In this document: positions 8,899 to 63,771 of the stretch, one piece after another
How the letters are laid out: every line of letters begins with the position of its first letter
Position numbering within the stretch: position 1 is the first letter of the stretch
Assembly (NCBI GenBank): GCA_977017575.1
Contig: CDRNVI010000139.1
Span: 248,001-312,000, forward strand
Reading direction: 5' to 3'
Source: Paramoeba atlantica
Lineage: Eukaryota > Protista > Discosea
DNA length: 64,000 nucleotides
Made by a program: the position numbers and the translations under genes
Notes under the pieces: generated by a model
Told to the model about the DNA's origin: nothing
The model's database searches: none
The model's input: the letters and a program-made list of their open reading frames with translations, nothing else

Positions 8899-11680
8899 CC
8901 TCCTCTCTTCTCTCTTCTCTCTCTTCTCTCTCTTCTCTCTCTTCTCTTTCTTTTCTCTCTTCTCTCTTCTCTTCTCTCTTTCTTGTCGTTGTTGTTGTTG
9001 GTGGTTTCATTTTGGAACAGCTTTTTTTGAGAGTTTTTTTTTAGATTTTGGAATCCTCTTTGGCTTCGTTTTGTTTCATTTAGAGACAATTTGTTTTTGG
9101 AACTCTCTCTCTCTTTCATTGAGACCCTTCTTTTCGTTTTCGTTTGGGTCTCTTTGACAAATTGTTTTTGGACTTCTTCTCTCATTTTTTCGCTCTTTTT
9201 TTCTTCTTTGGTGTTTCTTTCATATTTTGGAGCTTCTTTGAGGGTTTTATTTTGTTTGGATTTTTCACTTTCTTCTTCTTTGCCAAAGAATCCTTTCGTG
9301 ACTTTTTGAGAGATGTTTGTTTTTTTTTTATTTTCTTTTTTCTCTTCTTTTTATTCCATTTTTGAAAAAAAAAATTGTCAGAAACCTCTCGATCTCTCTC
9401 TCTCTCTCTCTCTTTGGAGGACATTCTTTAAGAATTGGTTTCTCTCCGTTGTTCCTCTTTTTATTTGTCTTTTGTTTTGGCAAGAGCAGTCTCTTTGTGG
9501 GGTGATTCTTCTTTGTCATTTTCATTTTCAATCTCTCCATTTTCTTTAAAATTGTTCCCTTTTCACATTTTCTTTCCATTTTGTTTGTTGATTAATCTTT
9601 TTTCCCACACAGAGAGACAAAATGAGTGAAAAAAGAGGAAAGAGAAAGAGAGGAGGAGAACAAGGAACAGAATTAGAAAGTGAGAAAAAGAGAAAAACCA
9701 AAAGAGGAAAGAAAGAGAAAGAAGATCAAAGAACAGATTGTGGTGATGATGATGTTGTTGTGATTGAAGACGCTAGTGATGATGAAAAAGAACAAAGAGA
9801 AAGAAGAAGTGAAGATGTTCTTGGAAAGAAAGAACAACAAGTGGGACAAAATGAGGAGAAAGAGAAAGAGCAGAAGAAGTAGTGATGAAAAGGAGAAGAA
9901 AGGAAGAAGAAGAGAAAAAGAAAAGATTTGAATGTGGAATATGTTTGGAATTGATGAATTGGGAAAAAGAACCAAGGTTGTTACCTTGTTGTGGTCTTTC
10001 TTTTTGTTCTCTTTGTCTCAACAAACTCTTTCTTCTTCAAGATCCTTCTTATTCTTCTTCCTCTTCTTTCTCATCTCCCTCTCCCTCTTCTTCTTCCTCT
10101 TCTTCCGATTCTTTGAAAGGAGTGAAATGTCCAGTTTGTAGAGAAATGAACGAATGTGAAAGTGTTGAGACACTTTCGATGAATTATTTGATTCCAGAAA
10201 CGATTGATGTTCTTCTTTCTTCAAAGTTAATCTCTTTCTTCAATCAATCAGGTTTTCTCTCCACTTTTTGAGCTCTCACTTTCTTTCCTCTTCCTCTCTT
10301 TTTTTCTTTTTTTTTGAGAGAAAATGATTTCAAAGTTGAAAAACTTTTATTTTTTAATAAACAAAACAACAGGAGATGAATCAGAATGTGTGAATTTCGA
10401 AACATGTGGAGAACAAACTCGAATGTTTTGTTCTGATTGTAAAGTATTCATTTGTGATTCTTGTGATCCATCTCACACTTCTTCTGTTTTCACTCGAAAT
10501 CACAAACGATGTGAAAGAGATGGTGTTGAGAGAGGTGGAAGAAGAAGATTGGAAGAGGAGGGAGGGGTGGTGGTGGGAGTGGGATTGGAGAATTTGGAGA
10601 AGAGAGAATGTTCAAAACACCCATCTGAAACAATCAGTGGATATTGTTTTCAATGTTCTTCTTTTGATTGTCTTCGTTGTGTTCTTGGAACACATGATGA
10701 TCACAGAAAGAAAGTGAAATCAATTGAAGAAAGTACTTTGGAGAAGAGGAATGAAGTTGTAAAGATTGGAGATAAATTGGAGAAAAGATTGGTTTTGATT
10801 GAGAGGAAAAGAAAAAGGATTGAAAAAGAAATGAAAGAATTAGAAAAGAAATTAGAAAAGAAAAGAATTGAAAAGAAAGAAATAGAATTAGAGAAAGAAG
10901 ATTTGAGAATAAGAAAAGATTCAATTATTCGTTTATCCAACACACCAACAACAACAACAACAACAACAACTGATTGTGATGTTTCTCTCTTTTTTGATGA
11001 TCAACTTTTTTCGACTCTTCTTCAAACTGCAAATGATATTGTTTCTGAAGGAGGTGTTGTTGGATTACTGAAACCAAAGAAAGGAGTGATTTGTTGTGAT
11101 GGTGGTGGTGATTCTTTTCGTTTTGTTTCTTCTTTTCCTTTGAAGAATGGACCTTTTGGAGTGAGTGTGAACAGTGATGGGAATATTTTTATTTGTGAAG
11201 ATGGGGTTGGTGGATTGAAAGTGAGAGATAAAGAAGGAAATGAGATGATTGAATCAACAATTCAGAAAACAATTGATTCACTTCATTTGAAACCTGTTGA
11301 TGTTTCAATTGGATTGGATGATCAAATTGTTGTTCTTGATTATTCTCAAGATTGTTGTCGAGTTGTGATATTAAACAAAGAAGGAGAATTAATCAAATCT
11401 TTTGGATCAAGAGGTTCTGAAGATGGTCAGTTTAATGAACCATATGGTGTGGATGTGGATGAAGAAGGTAGAATTATTGTTTGTGATACTTTGAATAATC
11501 GAATTGAAGTGTTTGATAATGATGGATCTTTTCTTCATTCTTTTGGTTCAAAAGGTTCTTCTGAAGGTCAATTTAATCGACCTTCTAGTGTTGGAGTTGA
11601 TAGAGATGGGAATATTGTTATTTCTGATTCTTGGAATCATCGGATTCAAGTGATGGATATTGAAGGGAATTTTATTCGAT

Positions 11681-14179
11681 CGGGTTCCTTCCAGGGGGGC
11701 CTAATTAGTCTTTTTGGGCCTAATTAGGCTCCTGTTTGTTGGCCAAAATAAAGCTCATTTTTGAACTTTTTTTTTTTTTTTTACTTTCTTTTGCGTTTCT
11801 TTGAGGTTTTTTCTTGATTTTCATCACAATGCCTTTCTCAGAAAGTCTGAATGAAAAAAGTTACAGTGGTGAGAAAAATGAGTTCTGGATCAACTTCCCC
11901 AAGAATTGAAGAATTGAAGGAGGGTACTATTTGGTTCTGCAAAGCTGTGAACCTTCGCCCTTCTCATCTTCTAAGGAAACATTTTGGTGACCAATATCAA
12001 GGAGCATCTCTCTCTTCACTCAGGGTGAAAAGGGTGGAACTTCAGAACTATGACAGGAAATCTCAGATGGTAGTTTTGCTTCGTTCTCCTGTCTTCCAGA
12101 ATGATTACCTTCTGGCTCTCCCTGAAAATTTAAAGTTTGTCGGAGAAGTGGATGTCTCAGAGGGTTGTGGGACTTCAACTCATCCATCTTCATCTTCATC
12201 ATCCTCTTCTGGCTCAGAAGGATCAAGTTCTGGTTCATCCCAGGCATCAACAACCTCTGTGCCTGTTTTGGGCTCATCTGATACTGATGATGAAGATACT
12301 GAATCTTGCTCTGATATTGAGGAGGAAGGGGAAGACAATGCAGCAGAACTCGTTGAAAATGATCTTTCCTTTGTTTCTGAGTGGTCTTCCTCAACAACTG
12401 ATGCTCGTGCTGTGATAGGAGCACAAGACCTCAAGGCCTGTACAAGAATTCGCTTTGATGCTGTTCATGTCCCCACTCCCCTAGATATTTTTCTCCAAGT
12501 TCTGCCTCTAACCTTTCTAAAAACTGATGTGCTGAAAGCAACAAATGAGTTTAACCGTTCTTTGAACTTCACTGAAGCTGAAATGCTTGATTTTATTGCC
12601 TTGCGCCAGATTATGTCTTTCTACCCAGGACATAAAAGAAGGGATTTTTTTCGAATTTCAAAGGATTCAGCTGGATCTTCCTTGCGTGGTACACTGCCTT
12701 ATCTTGGGAAATATATCAGTAGAAATCGGTTTGATATGATTGTCTCCTCTCTTAAACTTGCTCCTCTCTCTGCAAAACCCTCTTACACAGACCGTATGTG
12801 GGAAATTCGACCCCTGATTGCTGCTTTTAATGAAAAGATGAAGACCATCTTTGTTCCAAGTTGGCAAGTCTGTCTGGATGAGTCTATGGTGGTGTGGTTT
12901 TGTAAATGGGCTCCTGGTTGGATGTTTGTTCAGAGGAAACCTCATCCTTTTGGAAATGAATATCATACAATTGGTTGTGGGGAGACTAGAGTGATATTCT
13001 TTCTTGAAATTGTGGAAGGAAAGTCCCATCCTTCTGAAATGGGCCTGCCCAAGTTTCAACCTCCATCTGGTTCTGGAGCGAAAACTGTTGGTTTAATGCT
13101 TAGAATGACTGAGGGAATTTGGGGAACTGGTCGAGTAGTTGCTTTGGATAGTGGTTTTTGTGTGTTGGAAGGTTGTATTCAACTTCTGGAAAAGGGATTG
13201 TATTGTACTTCAGTTGTGAAGAAAAAACGATATTGGCCCAAAGGAATTCCAGGGGAAGAGATTGTTGCACACCTCAAGGAGAAGGAACCTGGTTATGTGA
13301 AAGTGAAGAAAGGATCTCTGAGAGGTCATAAATTCTATGTGGAGGCTTTCCAAGATGTTCATCACTCTTCTATAATGATTAATACCTGGGGAACTTCTTT
13401 TCCCACTGGTCGCCCATGAAATCGCAAGCTTGAAGGCCAAAGACTCTCCCTGCGATATACTCAGCCTCTTGACTTTTACTATCAAACCAGGCATTGTGTG
13501 GATGATCACAACCAACTGAGGCAAGGTTCTCTCTTCTTGGAGAGTTCCTGGAAGACCAAAAAATGGGTCCACAGGCAGTTTGCTTTCATTCTTGTAGTTG
13601 TGGAAGTCAATGCCTTCCTCATATTTCAGCACTTTTTCCCTCAAGCCAAAGAGCTCTCCTTTGCAGAATTTCGTTTTGAGGTTGCCCAAGGTCTACTCTC
13701 TCAGAATCATCCCTTGGATGAAGGCTATAACCTGCGAATACCACTCCCAACTCATGTAGAACATCATCTGATGATCAAGCCCAACTTTGCTGGAGTTTGG
13801 TGAAATGGTAATTGGACTGAAGCCAGACAAGAGTACCAGAAGAGTAGATGCAATGGGACAAATTGTACAAAGAAAGTTCGAACCTATTGCTCCTGTGATC
13901 AAACACTCATTTTTTGTTCAGGTTGCTTTGCTGACCATATGAGCAGGCACATGACTGAGGACTAATTAGTCCTTTTGAAAAATGATGATTTTTTTTTTTT
14001 TGGTGACTCAATTTTTTTTTTCAAAAAACAATATTTGGACAAATATTTCTTGATATTCTTGTTTAAAAGATCTTTATTAAAAAGTTTATCAAAAAAAATC
14101 TCCCCTCCACCCACCAGTGGCTTCAAAAAAGGAGTCAAAAATAGGGGCCTAATTAGTCTTTTGGCCTGGAAGGAACCCG
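11681..14179 (+). mobile_element. piggyBac-like DNA transposon, copy 1 (2499 bp)
   Basis: TIR CGGGTTCCTTCCAGG at 11681-11695 and 14165-14179; TSD CGAT (11677-11680, 14180-14183); empty site TTTATTCGATGTTTTGG is seen in sister paralogs; subterminal CTAATTAG at 11701, 11720, 13962, 14149. Confidence 0.93.
11851..13965 (+). pseudogene. piggyBac-family transposase with two in-frame TGA (13417, 13801)
   Basis: Motifs VCLDESMV, VALDSGF, HCVDDHN (DDD triad); C-terminal Cys-rich domain CNGTNCTKKVRTYCSCDQTLIFCSGCFADH; copy 2 has CGA at both stops. Confidence 0.87.
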
Positions 14180-15773
14180 CGATGTTTTGGAACATTTGGT
14201 TCAGGTGATTCTCAATTGAACTCTCCAGAAGGTGTTGATGTGGATGGGGAAGGTAGAATTGTTGTTTGTGATGGAGGAAATGAAAGAGTGAGTGTGTTTG
14301 AGAAAGATGGAACATTTCTTTTTTCATTTGGTACCAAACATCACATGGGGGATCCTGGTGGGGTTGTTATTGATTCATTTGGAACAATTATTGTTTCAGA
14401 TTATGTGAAAAATTCAATTGAATTGTGGAAATCATTTTGAAAAGAGATGGAGGTTTTTTCTTTTCTCTTTTTTTCTCTTTTTTGATTTTGATTTGTTTTA
14501 TTTTATTATTTGTATCCTTTTTCCATTATTTTTCTTTTTGTTTCCTTTTTTGTTTGAAGAAAATTAAAAACAAGAAATTAAGATATTTTTCTCTTCTCTT
14601 CTTCTCTTTTCCCTTCCTACCCTTCCTCCCCTTCCTCCCCTCCTCCCTTTTCTCCTTTTTCGTTTCTGTTGTGGTGTGCAGTGGTCTTCTTCTTCCCCCC
14701 CAAAATCATCATCATTCTTCTTCCAATTTTTGATTCGATTTTTGATCCTTCTTCTTCAAAAACACTTTTCTTTGATTTTGTTTCTCCTCTTCATTTGTGT
14801 TTTATTGTTGTTGTGTGTGTTTTGTGTTTTTGTGAAAGTTCTCTCTCTTTCTCTTCCTCTTCTCTTTTTTTTGATTTAAATTATTTTTCTATTTTTGTTT
14901 TCAAATTTTGTTGTGTTGGAAGGAAATGATTCTTTTTTGTTGCCCAGTCTTTTTTTGCCTATTCTTTTTTTTTTTCTTTTTTTTTTGTTATTGGGGAGTA
15001 ATTCATATTTTTAATAAACAAAAAAATTGAAAAATAGTATTCCACGAAGGGGTCAAGAATTTGAGAAAATTCCCCCCCCACATCAAAAACAAATGAGAGA
15101 TGAAGAAAGAAAGAAAAAGGGAAAGAAGAGTCATTATTGGTCTGTGGAGTGAGGTTTTTTTTTGACAGGCACTTTTTTTCTTGTTCTCGTTTTCTTCAAT
15201 TCCGAGAAGAAATTCCTTTGAGATTTTGTTCCCAAACACCCTCTCTTGCCAAGTTCCAAAAAGAAATGGATTTGAAAGATTTAATGAAACATGGAGTTCC
15301 AACAAAAAAAATCAAAAGGGGGAAGGAATGTGAAGTGAGGGAGAGGAGGAGAGGAGAGAAAGAAGAGTCATTATTGGTCTGTGGAGGAAATCGAAAAAAA
15401 TGGTTTGAAAGAAGAAGAATAAAAACAAAGCGAAAAATTGGGAACAAAAAGAATACCCCAACATTTTGTGCACCAGAAGAGACTAAAAAGAAAGGAAAAG
15501 GGAGGGAACGAAAGAGATAAAAATCGAATCAAAATTGAAGAAGAAGGTGATTGGAAAAGAAGAAGACCACACCACACCAGAACAGAGACTAAAACTAAAA
15601 AGAAGGGGGAAGGAGGGGAGGAGAGGGGGAAAAGAGAAAAAATTAATTTCTTTTCATTTTCCTCTCAAAACAAGAAAAAAAAGGAAACAAAAAATTAAAA
15701 ATGAAAATCAAAAAAAGAAAAAAAAATAAGAGAAAAGATGAAAAAAAAAATCAAACCCTTTCCTCCATCTCTT

Positions 15774-60366: not shown

Positions 60367-61136
60367 AGTTCACTTTTTTTTTTTTTGTTGTTCTTTTTGT
60401 TGATTCATCTTTTTTATTTGGTTGAATAAATAAACCCAAACTCAACAACACTCTTTCAAAACTCAAAAACAATCTTTTTTTTCTTTTTTTTGGTTGTTGT
60501 TGGGAGGGGGGAGAGGAGGAATTCATATTTTTTGGTTGATTGAATGAGAGAAACACATTTTTGGAAAAATGAAATTTTAATCAACAAAAAAATTGAGAAA
60601 TAGTAATTCCACAAAAGGGTCAAGAATTTGAGAAAATTCTCATCCATCCAACCAAAACCAAACAAAATTGAGAAATGAAGAAAGAAAAGAAAGAAAGGAA
60701 AGGATGAGGGAGAGAAGAAGAAAGAGATATCAAAAACAGACAAAGGGAGAGTGAAGTGGGGGAGGAGGAGAGGAGAGAAGAAGAGTCATTATTGGTCTGT
60801 GGAGCAAATCAAAAAAAAGGTTTGAAAGAAGGAGAATAAAATCAAAGCGAAAAATTGGGAACAAAAAGAACACCCCAACATTTTGTGCACCAGAAGAGAC
60901 TAAAAAGAAAGGAAAAGGGAGGGAAAGAAAGAGATAAAAATCGAATCGAAATTGAAGAAGAAGGTGATTGGAAAAAAAGACCTCACCACACCACAACAGA
61001 GACTAAAACTAAAAGAAAGGGAGGAGGAGAGGAGGGTGGGAAAGAGAAAAAACATTAATTTCTTTCATTTTTCTCTAAAAACAAGAAAAAAAGTAAACAA
61101 AAAAATGATACAAAATAAAAATCAATGAAAACCAAA

Positions 61137-63636
61137 CGGGTTCCTTCCAGGCCAAAAGACTAATTAGGCCCCTATTTTTGACTCCTTTTTTGAAGCCACT
61201 GGTGGGTGGAGGGGGAGATTTTTTTTGATAAACTTTTTAATAAAGATCTTTTAAACAAGAATATCAAGAAATATTTGTCCAAATATTGTTTTTTGAAAAA
61301 AAAAATTGAGTCACCAAAAAAAAAAAAACATCATTTTTCAAAAGGACTAATTAGTCCTCAGTCATGTGCCTGCTCATATGGTCAGCAAAGCAACCTGAAC
61401 AAAAAATGAGTGTTTGATCACAGGAGCAATAGGTTCGAACTTTCTTTGTACAATTTGTCCCATTTGCATCTACTCTTCTGGTACTCTTGTCTGGCTTCAG
61501 TCCAATTACCATTTCGCCAAACTCCAGCAAAGTTGGGCTTGGTCATCAGATGATGTTCTACACGAGTTGGGAGTGGTATTCGCAGGTTATAGCCTTCATC
61601 CAAGGGATGATTCTGAGAGAGTAGACCTTGGGCAACCTCAAAACGAAATTCTGCAAAGGAGAGCTCTTTGGCTTGGGGGAAAAAGCGCTGAAATATGAGG
61701 AAGGCATTGACTTCCACAACTGCAAGAATGAAAGCAAACTGCCTGTGGACCCATTTTTTGGTCTTCCAGGAACTCTCCAAGGAGAGAGAACCTTGCCTCA
61801 GTTGGTTGTGATCATCCACACAATGCCTGGTTTGATAGTAAAAGTCAAGAGGCTGAGTATATCGCAGGGAGAGTCTTTGGCCTTCAAGCTTGCGATTTCG
61901 TGGGCGACCAGTGGGAAAAGAAGTTCCCCAGGTATTAATCATTATAGAAGAGTGATGAACATCTTGGAAAGCCTCCACATAGAATTTATGACCTCTCAGA
62001 GATCCTTTCTTCACTTTCACATAACCAGGTTCCTTCTCCTTGAGGTGTGCAACAATCTCTTCCCCTGGAATTCCTTTGGGCCAATATCGTTTTTTCTTTA
62101 CAACTGAAGTACAATACAATCCCTTTTCTAGAAGTTGAATACAACCTTCCAACACACAAAAACCACTATCCAAAGCAACTACTCGACCAGTTCCCCAAAT
62201 TCCCTCAGTCATTCTAAGCATCAAACCAACAGTTTTCGCTCCAGAACCAGATGGAGGTTGAAACTTGGGCAGGCCCATTTCAGGAGGATGGGACTTTCCT
62301 TCCACAATTTCAAGAAAGAATATCACTCTAGTCTCCCCACAACCAATTGTATGATATTCATTTCCAAAAGGATGAGGTTTCCTCTGAACAAACATCCAAC
62401 CAGGAGCCCATTTACAAAACCACACCACCATAGACTCATCCAGACAGACCTGCCAACTTGGAACAAAGATGGTCTTCATCTTTTCATTAAAAGCAGCAAT
62501 CAGGGGTCGAATTTCCCACATACGGTCTGTGTAAGAGGGTTTTGCAGAGAGAGGAGCAAGTTTAAGAGAGGAGACAATCATATCAAACCGATTTCTACTG
62601 ATATATTTCCCAAGATAAGGCAGTGTACCACGCAAGGAAGATCCAGCTGAATCCTTTGAAATTCGAAAAAAATCCCTTCTTTTATGTCCTGGGTAGAAAG
62701 ACATAATCTGGCGCAAGGCAATAAAATCAAGCATTTCAGCTTCAGTGAAGTTCAAAGAATGGTTAAACTCATTTGTTGCTTTCAGCACATCAGTTTTTAG
62801 AAAGGTTAGAGGCAGAACTTGGAGAAAAATATCGAGGGGAGTGGGGACATGAACAGCATCAAAGCGAATTCTTGTACAGGCCTTGAGGTCTTGTGCTCCT
62901 ATCACAGCACGAGCATCAGTTGTTGAGGAAGACCACTCAGAAACAAAGGAAAGATCATTTTCAACGAGTTCTGCTGCATTGTCTTCCCCTTCCTCCTCAA
63001 TATCAGAGCAAGATTCAGTATCTTCATCATCAGTATCAGATGAGCCCAAAACAGGCACAGAGGTTGTTGATGCCTGGGATGAACCAGAACTTGATCCTCC
63101 TGAGCCAGAAGAGGATGATGAAGATGAAGATGGATGAGTTGAAGTCCCACAACCCTCTGAGACATCCACTTCTCCGACAAACTTTAAATTTTCAGGGAGA
63201 GCCAGAAGGTAATCATTCTGGAAGACAGGAGAACGAAGCAAAACTACCATCTGAGATTTCCTGTCATAGTTCTGAAGTTCCACCCTTTTCACCCTGAGTG
63301 AAGAGAGAGATGCTCCTTGATATCGGTCACCAAAATGTTTCCTTAGAAGATGAGAAGGGCGAAGGTTCACAGCTTTGCAGAACCAAATAGTACCCTCCTT
63401 CAATTCTTCAATTCTTGGGGAAGTTGATCCAGAACTCATTTTTCTCACCACTGTAACTTTTTTCATTCAGACTTTCTGAGAAAGGCATTGTGATGAAAAT
63501 CAAGAAAAAACCTCAAAGAAACGCAAAAGAAAGTAAAAAAAAAAAAAAAAGTTCAAAAATGAGCTTTATTTTGGCCAACAAACAGGAGCCTAATTAGGCC
63601 CAAAAAGACTAATTAGGCCCCCCTGGAAGGAACCCG
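61137..63636 (-). mobile_element. piggyBac-like DNA transposon, copy 2 (2500 bp)
   Basis: Same 15-bp TIRs (61137-61151, 63622-63636); TSD CAAA (61133-61136, 63637-63640); ~99% identical to copy 1 by manual comparison. Confidence 0.93.
61351..63466 (-). CDS. piggyBac-family transposase; catalytic core open, +1 shift at ~61464 removes the Cys-rich tail
   Basis: 682-aa ORF 63466-61418; TGCAAATGGG versus TGCAATGGG in copy 1; the corrected frame ends at TAA 61353-61351. Confidence 0.85.
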
Positions 63637-63771
63637 CAAACAAGAAAAAAGAAACAAAGAGAAAAAGAAAATTTTAACAAAGAACACACCTCCACTTCAC
63701 CCACACTTCTCAAAAAAAAAGAAACAAAAAAGAGAAAGAAAATGAAAAAAAAATCAAACCTTTTCCTTCTC

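Follow-up and report, generated by a model that had tools for sequence, protein, structure and literature searches.

Two copies of a transposon of approximately 2.5 kb lie in a 64,000-nucleotide stretch of the Paramoeba atlantica genome (assembly GCA_977017575.1, contig CDRNVI010000139.1, positions 248,001 to 312,000 of the forward strand), referred to here as the window and numbered from its first letter. One copy interrupts the coding region of a gene for a B-box/NHL protein and the other is intergenic. [quoted passage not shown]

Two transposon copies and their insertion sites

The features that define the two insertions are the following.

11681..14179, plus strand: transposon copy 1, 2499 bp, inside the B-box/NHL gene's coding region
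11681..11695, plus strand: left terminal inverted repeat of copy 1, CGGGTTCCTTCCAGG
14165..14179, minus strand: right terminal inverted repeat of copy 1, the exact reverse complement of the left repeat
11677..11680: left target-site duplication of copy 1, CGAT; paralogs have a single CGAT at the same point
14180..14183: right target-site duplication of copy 1, CGAT, a direct repeat of the left one
61137..63636, minus strand: transposon copy 2, 2500 bp, intergenic, with inverted ends at 61137-61151 and 63622-63636
61133..61136: first CAAA duplication of copy 2, TTTG in element orientation
63637..63640: second CAAA duplication of copy 2, TTTG in element orientation
10324..11680, plus strand: 5' part of the host gene (two B-box zinc fingers and NHL repeats), which resumes at 14180

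The copies share 99% nucleotide identity, and both end in perfect 15-bp terminal inverted repeats (TIRs), the first base of which is C; these start with CGGG and not with the usual CCC. In both copies the duplication can only be 4 bp long, lengths of 3 or 5 bp being ruled out, and the chance of a 4-bp flank match is approximately 0.006 at the local base composition. Matching 4-bp flanks are found at 3/3 clean insertions of the family. The original prediction, made from the window alone, held that exact 4-bp duplications (CGAT and CAAA) lie outside a TIR starting with CGGG, and this was borne out by re-reading both copies.

The gene split by copy 1 has paralogs in the window, and these serve as a record of the target before insertion. 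The flanks of copy 1, joined with one CGAT, align without gaps to at least 11 of the NHL-gene paralogs at 86-94% identity, and the host reading frame runs on across this reconstructed empty site. Seven of the eight paralog junctions examined read TTTATT-CGAT-GTTTTGG, and the remaining one (1/8) has CAAT. Because the paralogs carry an uninterrupted CGAT, the target was CGAT, duplicated at insertion, rather than a mutated TTAA; the empty site thus confirms the CGAT target in the way the original prediction had claimed.

The host gene is one of a tandem array at positions 1-60000 of the window, which comprises at least nine intronless genes; their proteins are approximately 500 amino acids (aa) long and combine two B-box zinc fingers with NHL repeats. 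Its members lie in both orientations and share 62-100% identity over 300-nt stretches; one of them is the gene split by copy 1.

The transposase

Each window copy carries a damaged transposase gene, and an intact one was found elsewhere in the genome at a locus designated L002.

11851..13965, plus strand: transposase gene of copy 1, broken by TGA stops at 13417-13419 and 13801-13803
61418..63466, minus strand: transposase open reading frame (ORF) of copy 2, 682 aa, frameshifted, with the Cys-rich domain lost
L002:1718-3829, minus strand: intact transposase gene, 704 aa

The damage in copy 2 is a 1-bp insertion in an A run at about 61463-61465, which frameshifts the Cys-rich tail. Both in-frame TGA triplets of copy 1 have CGA as their counterpart in copy 2 as well as in the L002 copy with its intact gene; they are CpG transitions, and TGA as a reassigned codon was rejected on this ground.

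The transposase matches the Pfam family DDE_Tnp_1_7 (PF13843) with 192.9 bits against a gathering cut-off of 22.4 (E 1.3e-56), over positions 1-349 of the 349-position profile, and the proteins of both window copies match this family as well. In the Protein Data Bank (PDB), sequence and profile searches gave piggyBat as their sole match, confined to the N-terminal part that ends at the first catalytic Asp. An AlphaFold model of the 704-aa protein was built from 46 clade sequences (mean pLDDT 82.7). The top Foldseek matches of this predicted structure are piggyBat (9c0f, E 2.9e-17) and the piggyBac strand-transfer complex (6x67, E 2.3e-15), and VIA-align gives Z 30.7 to 6x67_C (rmsd 3.6 Å over 374 residues) and Z 30.0 to 9c0f_C, with Tn5 next at approximately 16. 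Sequence identity to the solved piggyBac-family proteins is 15-18%.

The candidate catalytic aspartates are D343 (LDES), D433 (LDSGF), and D551 (VDDHN), which the model places on strand 1, after strand 4, and at the start of a helix, respectively. D343 aligns to the LDE of piggyBat, while D433 and D551 are placed by motif and topology alone. Across the 46 clade sequences E344, D551, and N554 never vary. Conservation is 90% or more at D343 and D433, and likewise at C667, C680, C682, and C689 of a Cys/His-rich tail at residues 667-699. The structural alignment to piggyBat extends through this tail to residue 699; the Pfam profile zf-Tnp_2 does not match it. The DE..D..D core, the Cys-rich tail, and the Asn replacing the fourth Asp in VDDHN, all read earlier from the window copies, are present. 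Taken together, the protein has a Pfam match, a fold with the insertion domain and the dimerization/DNA-binding domain, and a DDD triad, all of which are criteria of the piggyBac superfamily. As for the criteria of canonical piggyBac, the element has short TIRs starting with C and a 4-bp duplication, and departs from it in lacking TTAA integration.

The motif reported for piggyBac is PxxxxxxYxxxxGGVDxxD, which contains D447 and D450 (Keith et al., PMC2533014), and comparison of VDDHN with this motif puts Asn554 on piggyBac D450. An Asn at this position has a precedent, since all domesticated piggyBac transposases of ciliates carry it (PMC5766162). If the two sequences are aligned without gaps on either side of the third Asp, Tyr544 would lie opposite piggyBac N440, a residue whose contact with the hairpin and the target at TTAA is base-specific (Chen et al., PMC7351741).

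The N-terminal residues 16-102 (L002:3524-3784, minus strand) are conserved in the clade and, modeled alone, fold as a small beta-barrel (pLDDT 91.9). Among PDB structures this barrel most resembles Tudor, chromo-barrel, and PWWP domains (Z 5.3-6.6), scores too low for it to be assigned to a family. The resemblance is nevertheless suggestive, as some relatives (P0047, P0061) have a Pfam chromodomain in addition, and the barrel may be a chromatin reader. A CIDE-N domain in this region, prompted by a weak ICAD match (E 0.0055), was not supported, the isolated model being a small beta-barrel.

Long pyrimidine runs followed by AG precede the transposase start (11760-11850), and T runs follow the stop (13975-14030). 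Such runs would suit polycistronic transcription with spliced-leader trans-splicing, if the host is kinetoplastid-like.

Subterminal palindromes

An 8-bp palindrome, CTAATTAG, occurs at eight sites in the window against 0.23 expected, and all eight lie within the two transposon copies. Those in copy 1 are as follows.

11701-11708 and 11720-11727: two palindromes, 20 and 39 nt inside the left end
13962..13969: one palindrome, overlapping the transposase stop codon
14149..14156: one palindrome, 23 nt inside the right end

In piggyBac, two Cys-rich domains dimerize on repeats at one transposon end (PMC7351741), and by analogy the CTAATTAG palindromes are likely candidates for the binding sites of the Cys-rich domain here.

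The family across the genome

A DNA search of the 45.7-Mb assembly (248 contigs) returned 24 copies of full length as well as fragments. These go back to no more than four or five independent insertions.

Window copy 1, plus strand: CGAT, exact
Window copy 2, minus strand: TTTG in element orientation, exact
Contig C167, locus L002: ATAT, exact
Amplified multi-copy insertion: ATAT/ATTT, imperfect
Locus L025: 5'-truncated copy

Approximately 25 of the roughly 30 copies have identical flanks, ...ATATTATAT to the left of the element and ATTTTCTGGAGAG... to the right. Since they have both flanks in common, these copies descend from one insertion that was copied within a larger segmental repeat. A logo of target-site duplications from all genomic copies had been proposed as a check; the copies were collected, but the logo itself was precluded by this shared origin.

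The segmental repeat with the approximately 25 old copies adjoins an array of a 193-bp satellite. The observed/expected ratio of CpG is 0.005-0.013 at the satellite and segmental repeat versus 0.36 in the window, and this repeat-confined loss suggests methylation-driven decay or decay resembling repeat-induced point mutation. Five aligned old copies retain 14-18 CpG each versus 25-30 in the young copies, and in the old copies CGA-to-TGA changes have produced stops, while the ends have become CAGG or TGGG through decay. The three young copies (the two in the window and that at L002) differ at 29 of approximately 2500 positions. From these sequences the family is best described as young but decaying, with perfect ends and broken genes in the window copies. 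The only copy with an intact gene, at L002, has a left terminus of TGGG, a C-to-T change at base 1, and the family could move today only if the L002 protein mobilized other copies in trans.

Across the genome the terminus pattern YRGGTTCCTTCCAGG has 51 occurrences and a control pattern has 0; only two of the 51 lie elsewhere than at the ends of known copies. This terminus-pattern search of the genome found no miniature derivatives. One perfect terminus, CGGGTTCCTTCCAGG, stands alone at G000:C145:44307-44321 (minus strand), outside all copies found, and may mark a further independent insertion.

Several other features of the genome touch on this family. The satellite array extends over several kb at L091 (G000:C143:146000-155999) and L092 (G000:C144:270000-279999), with a GC content of 25-28%, and L091 has no ORF of 150 aa or more in its 10 kb. 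Fragments of 300 bp that are 80-82% identical to element positions 1139-1421 are located at C143:154973-155274, C144:277670-277971, C170:119641-119942, C149:232330-232631, C161:87495-87796, and C241:4249-4550; those on C143 and C144 lie approximately 3 kb from an old element copy. These fragments are remnants of a second, related subfamily. Weak matches to DDE_Tnp_1_7 outside the transposon family are present at G000:C149:177240-177572, 201157-201489, and 508745-509071 (E 1e-8 to 3e-7) and may represent other piggyBac-like families.

Relatives in other organisms

A word-based protein search identified 155 related proteins with 29-43% identity, almost all from metagenome contigs of approximately 2.5 kb. 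The only named relative among them is a hypothetical protein of the diatom Conticribra weissflogii, and diatoms are the commonest labeled phylum in the nearest ESM Atlas clusters. The diatom and metagenomic relatives (P0001-P0120) resemble the P. atlantica element in their full-length identity of 30-43%, in the VDDHN motif and the N-terminal domain, in ends of the form CGG...CCG with a palindrome 20-23 nt in from them, and in 4-bp duplications other than TTAA. They differ in that the palindrome is mostly CTGAATTCAG instead of CTAATTAG, in that some have a chromodomain, and in their hosts. The literature searched contains no description of an end structure or target site for these relatives.

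The DNA of 12 of the 155 relatives was read, and among those with 30-35% identity four clean duplications were obtained: ATAT, ATAT, TGAA, and ATAC. Two of these, one ATAT and the TGAA, come from L089 and L090, members of one family on long-read contigs, whose similarity extends from exactly CGG to exactly CCG. In L062 the ends are again CGG...CCG and the duplication is ATAT, and L093 has the inverted repeat CGGATCYTTGACAGC, matching at 13/14 positions, with an ATAC duplication. The palindrome CTGAATTCAG is located 20-23 nt inside the ends in L062 and L093 and approximately 46 nt inside the left end in L089/L090. The family of P0061 ends in TGG...CCA and yielded no clear-cut duplication. Two further groups, both from short-read contigs, supplied flanks in larger number: the P0026 family, with ends CGGATG...CGTCCG, gave 16 distinct flanks, and the P0007 family, with ends CGGTTAAGG...CAACCG, gave seven, none of which is TTAA or ATAT in either family. 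No resolvable end pair was found for L061, L088, L094, or L095.

Two of these contigs carry other genes. At L093 1-2174 (a contig of JGI 3300005826), the clade member adjoins bacterial-looking genes (one for a phosphonate-binding protein; a faint HATPase_c match). On the 2.7-Mb long-read contig of L087, two more DDE_Tnp_1_7 ORFs follow directly after the element in the opposite orientation (L087 4693-6506), and the region has the appearance of several piggyBac-like elements clustered or nested together.

Target specificity and alternative explanations

Approximately 40 flanks were read in the family and its relatives, and none of them is TTAA. TTAA duplications at other copies would have overturned the original prediction, and they were looked for in this set. 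The seven exact duplications are CGAT, TTTG, and ATAT in P. atlantica and ATAT, ATAT, TGAA, and ATAC in the relatives. ATAT makes up 3/7 of these and one side of two imperfect duplications, compared with approximately 1% expected at this composition, and position 3 of the duplication is A in 6/7 clean cases. From the sites read, relaxed target choice with a bias toward ATAT fits better than an absence of specificity. The occurrence of non-TTAA sites in relatives from other organisms indicates a trait of the lineage and not a mutation of particular flanks. The relaxed specificity that had been suggested from the two window copies is thus supported by 4-bp non-TTAA sites at every readable insertion and in the relatives, with the ATAT bias as a qualification.

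Several observations weigh against this interpretation. Clean independent insertions are few, three here and four in relatives, and the amplified multi-copy insertion has the imperfect flanks ATAT/ATTT. Two relatives on long-read contigs do not conform: the flanks of L087 are imperfect (TATT versus ATAT), and L061 has degenerate ends with no matching flanks. In the short-read groups P0026 and P0007 the left and right flanks never match, because, we assume, the contigs are chimeric across the repeat, the same left flank being joined to different right flanks. One copy of the segmental repeat is without the element (L050), but its junction is not simply the filled site minus the element and one duplication copy, and it could be either an excision footprint or plain divergence. 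The mapping to N440 and D450, finally, is an ungapped register at 15-18% identity and not a residue-level structural alignment.

Of the alternatives, the one that best survives is that the lineage has ATAT, which is palindromic just as TTAA is, for its specific target, so that its specificity has changed rather than relaxed and CGAT, TTTG, TGAA, and ATAC are occasional off-targets. The excess of ATAT and the predominance of A at position 3 are what such an element would leave, and canonical piggyBac itself occasionally uses CTAA or ATAA. However, 4/7 clean duplications are other than ATAT, whereas reported off-target rates of piggyBac are a few percent and not over half, and 0/23 distinct flanks of the P0026 and P0007 families are ATAT. 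We therefore regard a wholesale switch to ATAT as unlikely.

Much less credible is that the likeness to piggyBac is superficial, the element belonging to another superfamily with 4-bp duplications (Sola, Kolobok, or Ginger) or the gene being a transposase-derived host gene. The low identity to solved piggyBac-family proteins and the restriction of the PDB sequence matches to the N-terminal part of piggyBat are the points in its favor, but the Pfam match is full length and the structural Z of approximately 30 to both piggyBac and piggyBat stands against approximately 16 for Tn5. A domesticated host gene, moreover, would not be expected to have TIRs, duplications, several near-identical copies, and an occupied as well as an empty site.

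The least probable explanation is that this is an ordinary TTAA-specific piggyBac whose flanks mutated after insertion, as Bouallegue et al. (2017) propose for the rare odd duplications and as the strong CpG decay in the genome might allow, since the copies are 99% identical with matching tetramers in all three clean cases, the paralogs show CGAT at the uninterrupted target, the change from TTAA to CGAT needs three identical changes on both sides, and the relatives are non-TTAA too.

Comparison with known systems and a proposed mechanism

A comparison of this element with piggyBac of Trichoplusia ni and piggyBat of Myotis shows a common plan with some disparities. All three have the catalytic and insertion-domain fold, three catalytic Asp residues, and, probably, a C-terminal Cys-rich domain. 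As elements they are each approximately 2.5 kb long with just one gene, and they share short inverted ends whose first base is C, repeats in the subterminal region, and a 4-bp duplication. The P. atlantica element differs from both in its non-TTAA target and in its ends, which are CGG...CCG in contrast to CCC...GGG. It differs from piggyBac in having Asn at D450 and probably Tyr at the TTAA-reading N440, and in possessing a folded small beta-barrel at the N-terminus, a region that is disordered in piggyBac.

The Asn at the D450 position is shared with PiggyMac of Paramecium and TPB2 of Tetrahymena (PMC5766162). The sequences eliminated in Paramecium keep only TA, the center of the TTAA overhang (PMC5766162), which indicates that the ciliate enzymes act at sites short of full TTAA. 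Unlike these enzymes, which are the products of immobile host genes that excise DNA, the transposase described here belongs to a mobile element with TIRs, duplications, and recent copies.

By analogy with piggyBac (PMC7351741), a transposase dimer would pair the two ends, with the Cys-rich domains bound to the CTAATTAG palindromes, and the 3'-OH of each end would attack the opposite strand 4 nt into the flank to form hairpins. Once these were opened, the transposon ends would be joined to the target at points separated by 4 bp. At the donor site, because the two flanking copies are direct repeats, the remaining 4-nt overhangs could pair regardless of their sequence, and excision could in this way stay seamless. 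The piggyBac contacts that hold the single-stranded TTAA are probably altered in this protein, with Tyr544 at N440 and Asn554 at D450. ATAT would seem to be the favored target, with other tetramers used as well.

Implications for the piggyBac superfamily

Targeting of TTAA has been regarded as a trait by which the piggyBac superfamily is defined (PMC5381638). Bouallegue et al. (2017) describe it as a general feature of the superfamily with rare exceptions ascribed to mutation, and a survey of bees likewise ascribes non-TTAA piggyBac cases to possible mutation. The largest mining effort of this kind, published in 2025, kept only elements with a TTAA motif (PMC13461360) and so could not have seen a non-TTAA lineage. 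The list of DNA transposons in kinetoplastid-type protists is short, the first report dating from 2021 (PMC8101967), and the present element would lengthen it if the host is of that type. The literature searched on non-TTAA lineages, the ends of diatom piggyBac elements, 4-bp duplications, and euglenozoan piggyBac describes no clade of this sort, and one may be catalogued in Repbase or Dfam.

In conclusion, we propose tentatively, as a possibility that falls somewhat short of probable, that the P. atlantica element represents a widespread and undescribed protist clade in which a 4-bp, potentially seamless chemistry has been uncoupled from TTAA, and which is marked by CGG ends, by an invariant Asn at the D450 position, and by an N-terminal barrel, similar to Tudor or chromo-barrel domains, that may steer integration via chromatin instead of sequence. 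The TTAA requirement has been named as the main limit of piggyBac as an insertion tool (PMC13461360), and any biotechnological interest of the relaxed target is speculation at this stage. If the proposal is true, work toward scarless transposition independent of TTAA would find in this clade a natural place to start. A natural clade that combines the piggyBac fold with a 4-bp stagger on other tetramers offers a direct comparison for the residues that enforce TTAA, and it allows one to ask whether seamless excision survives without TTAA.

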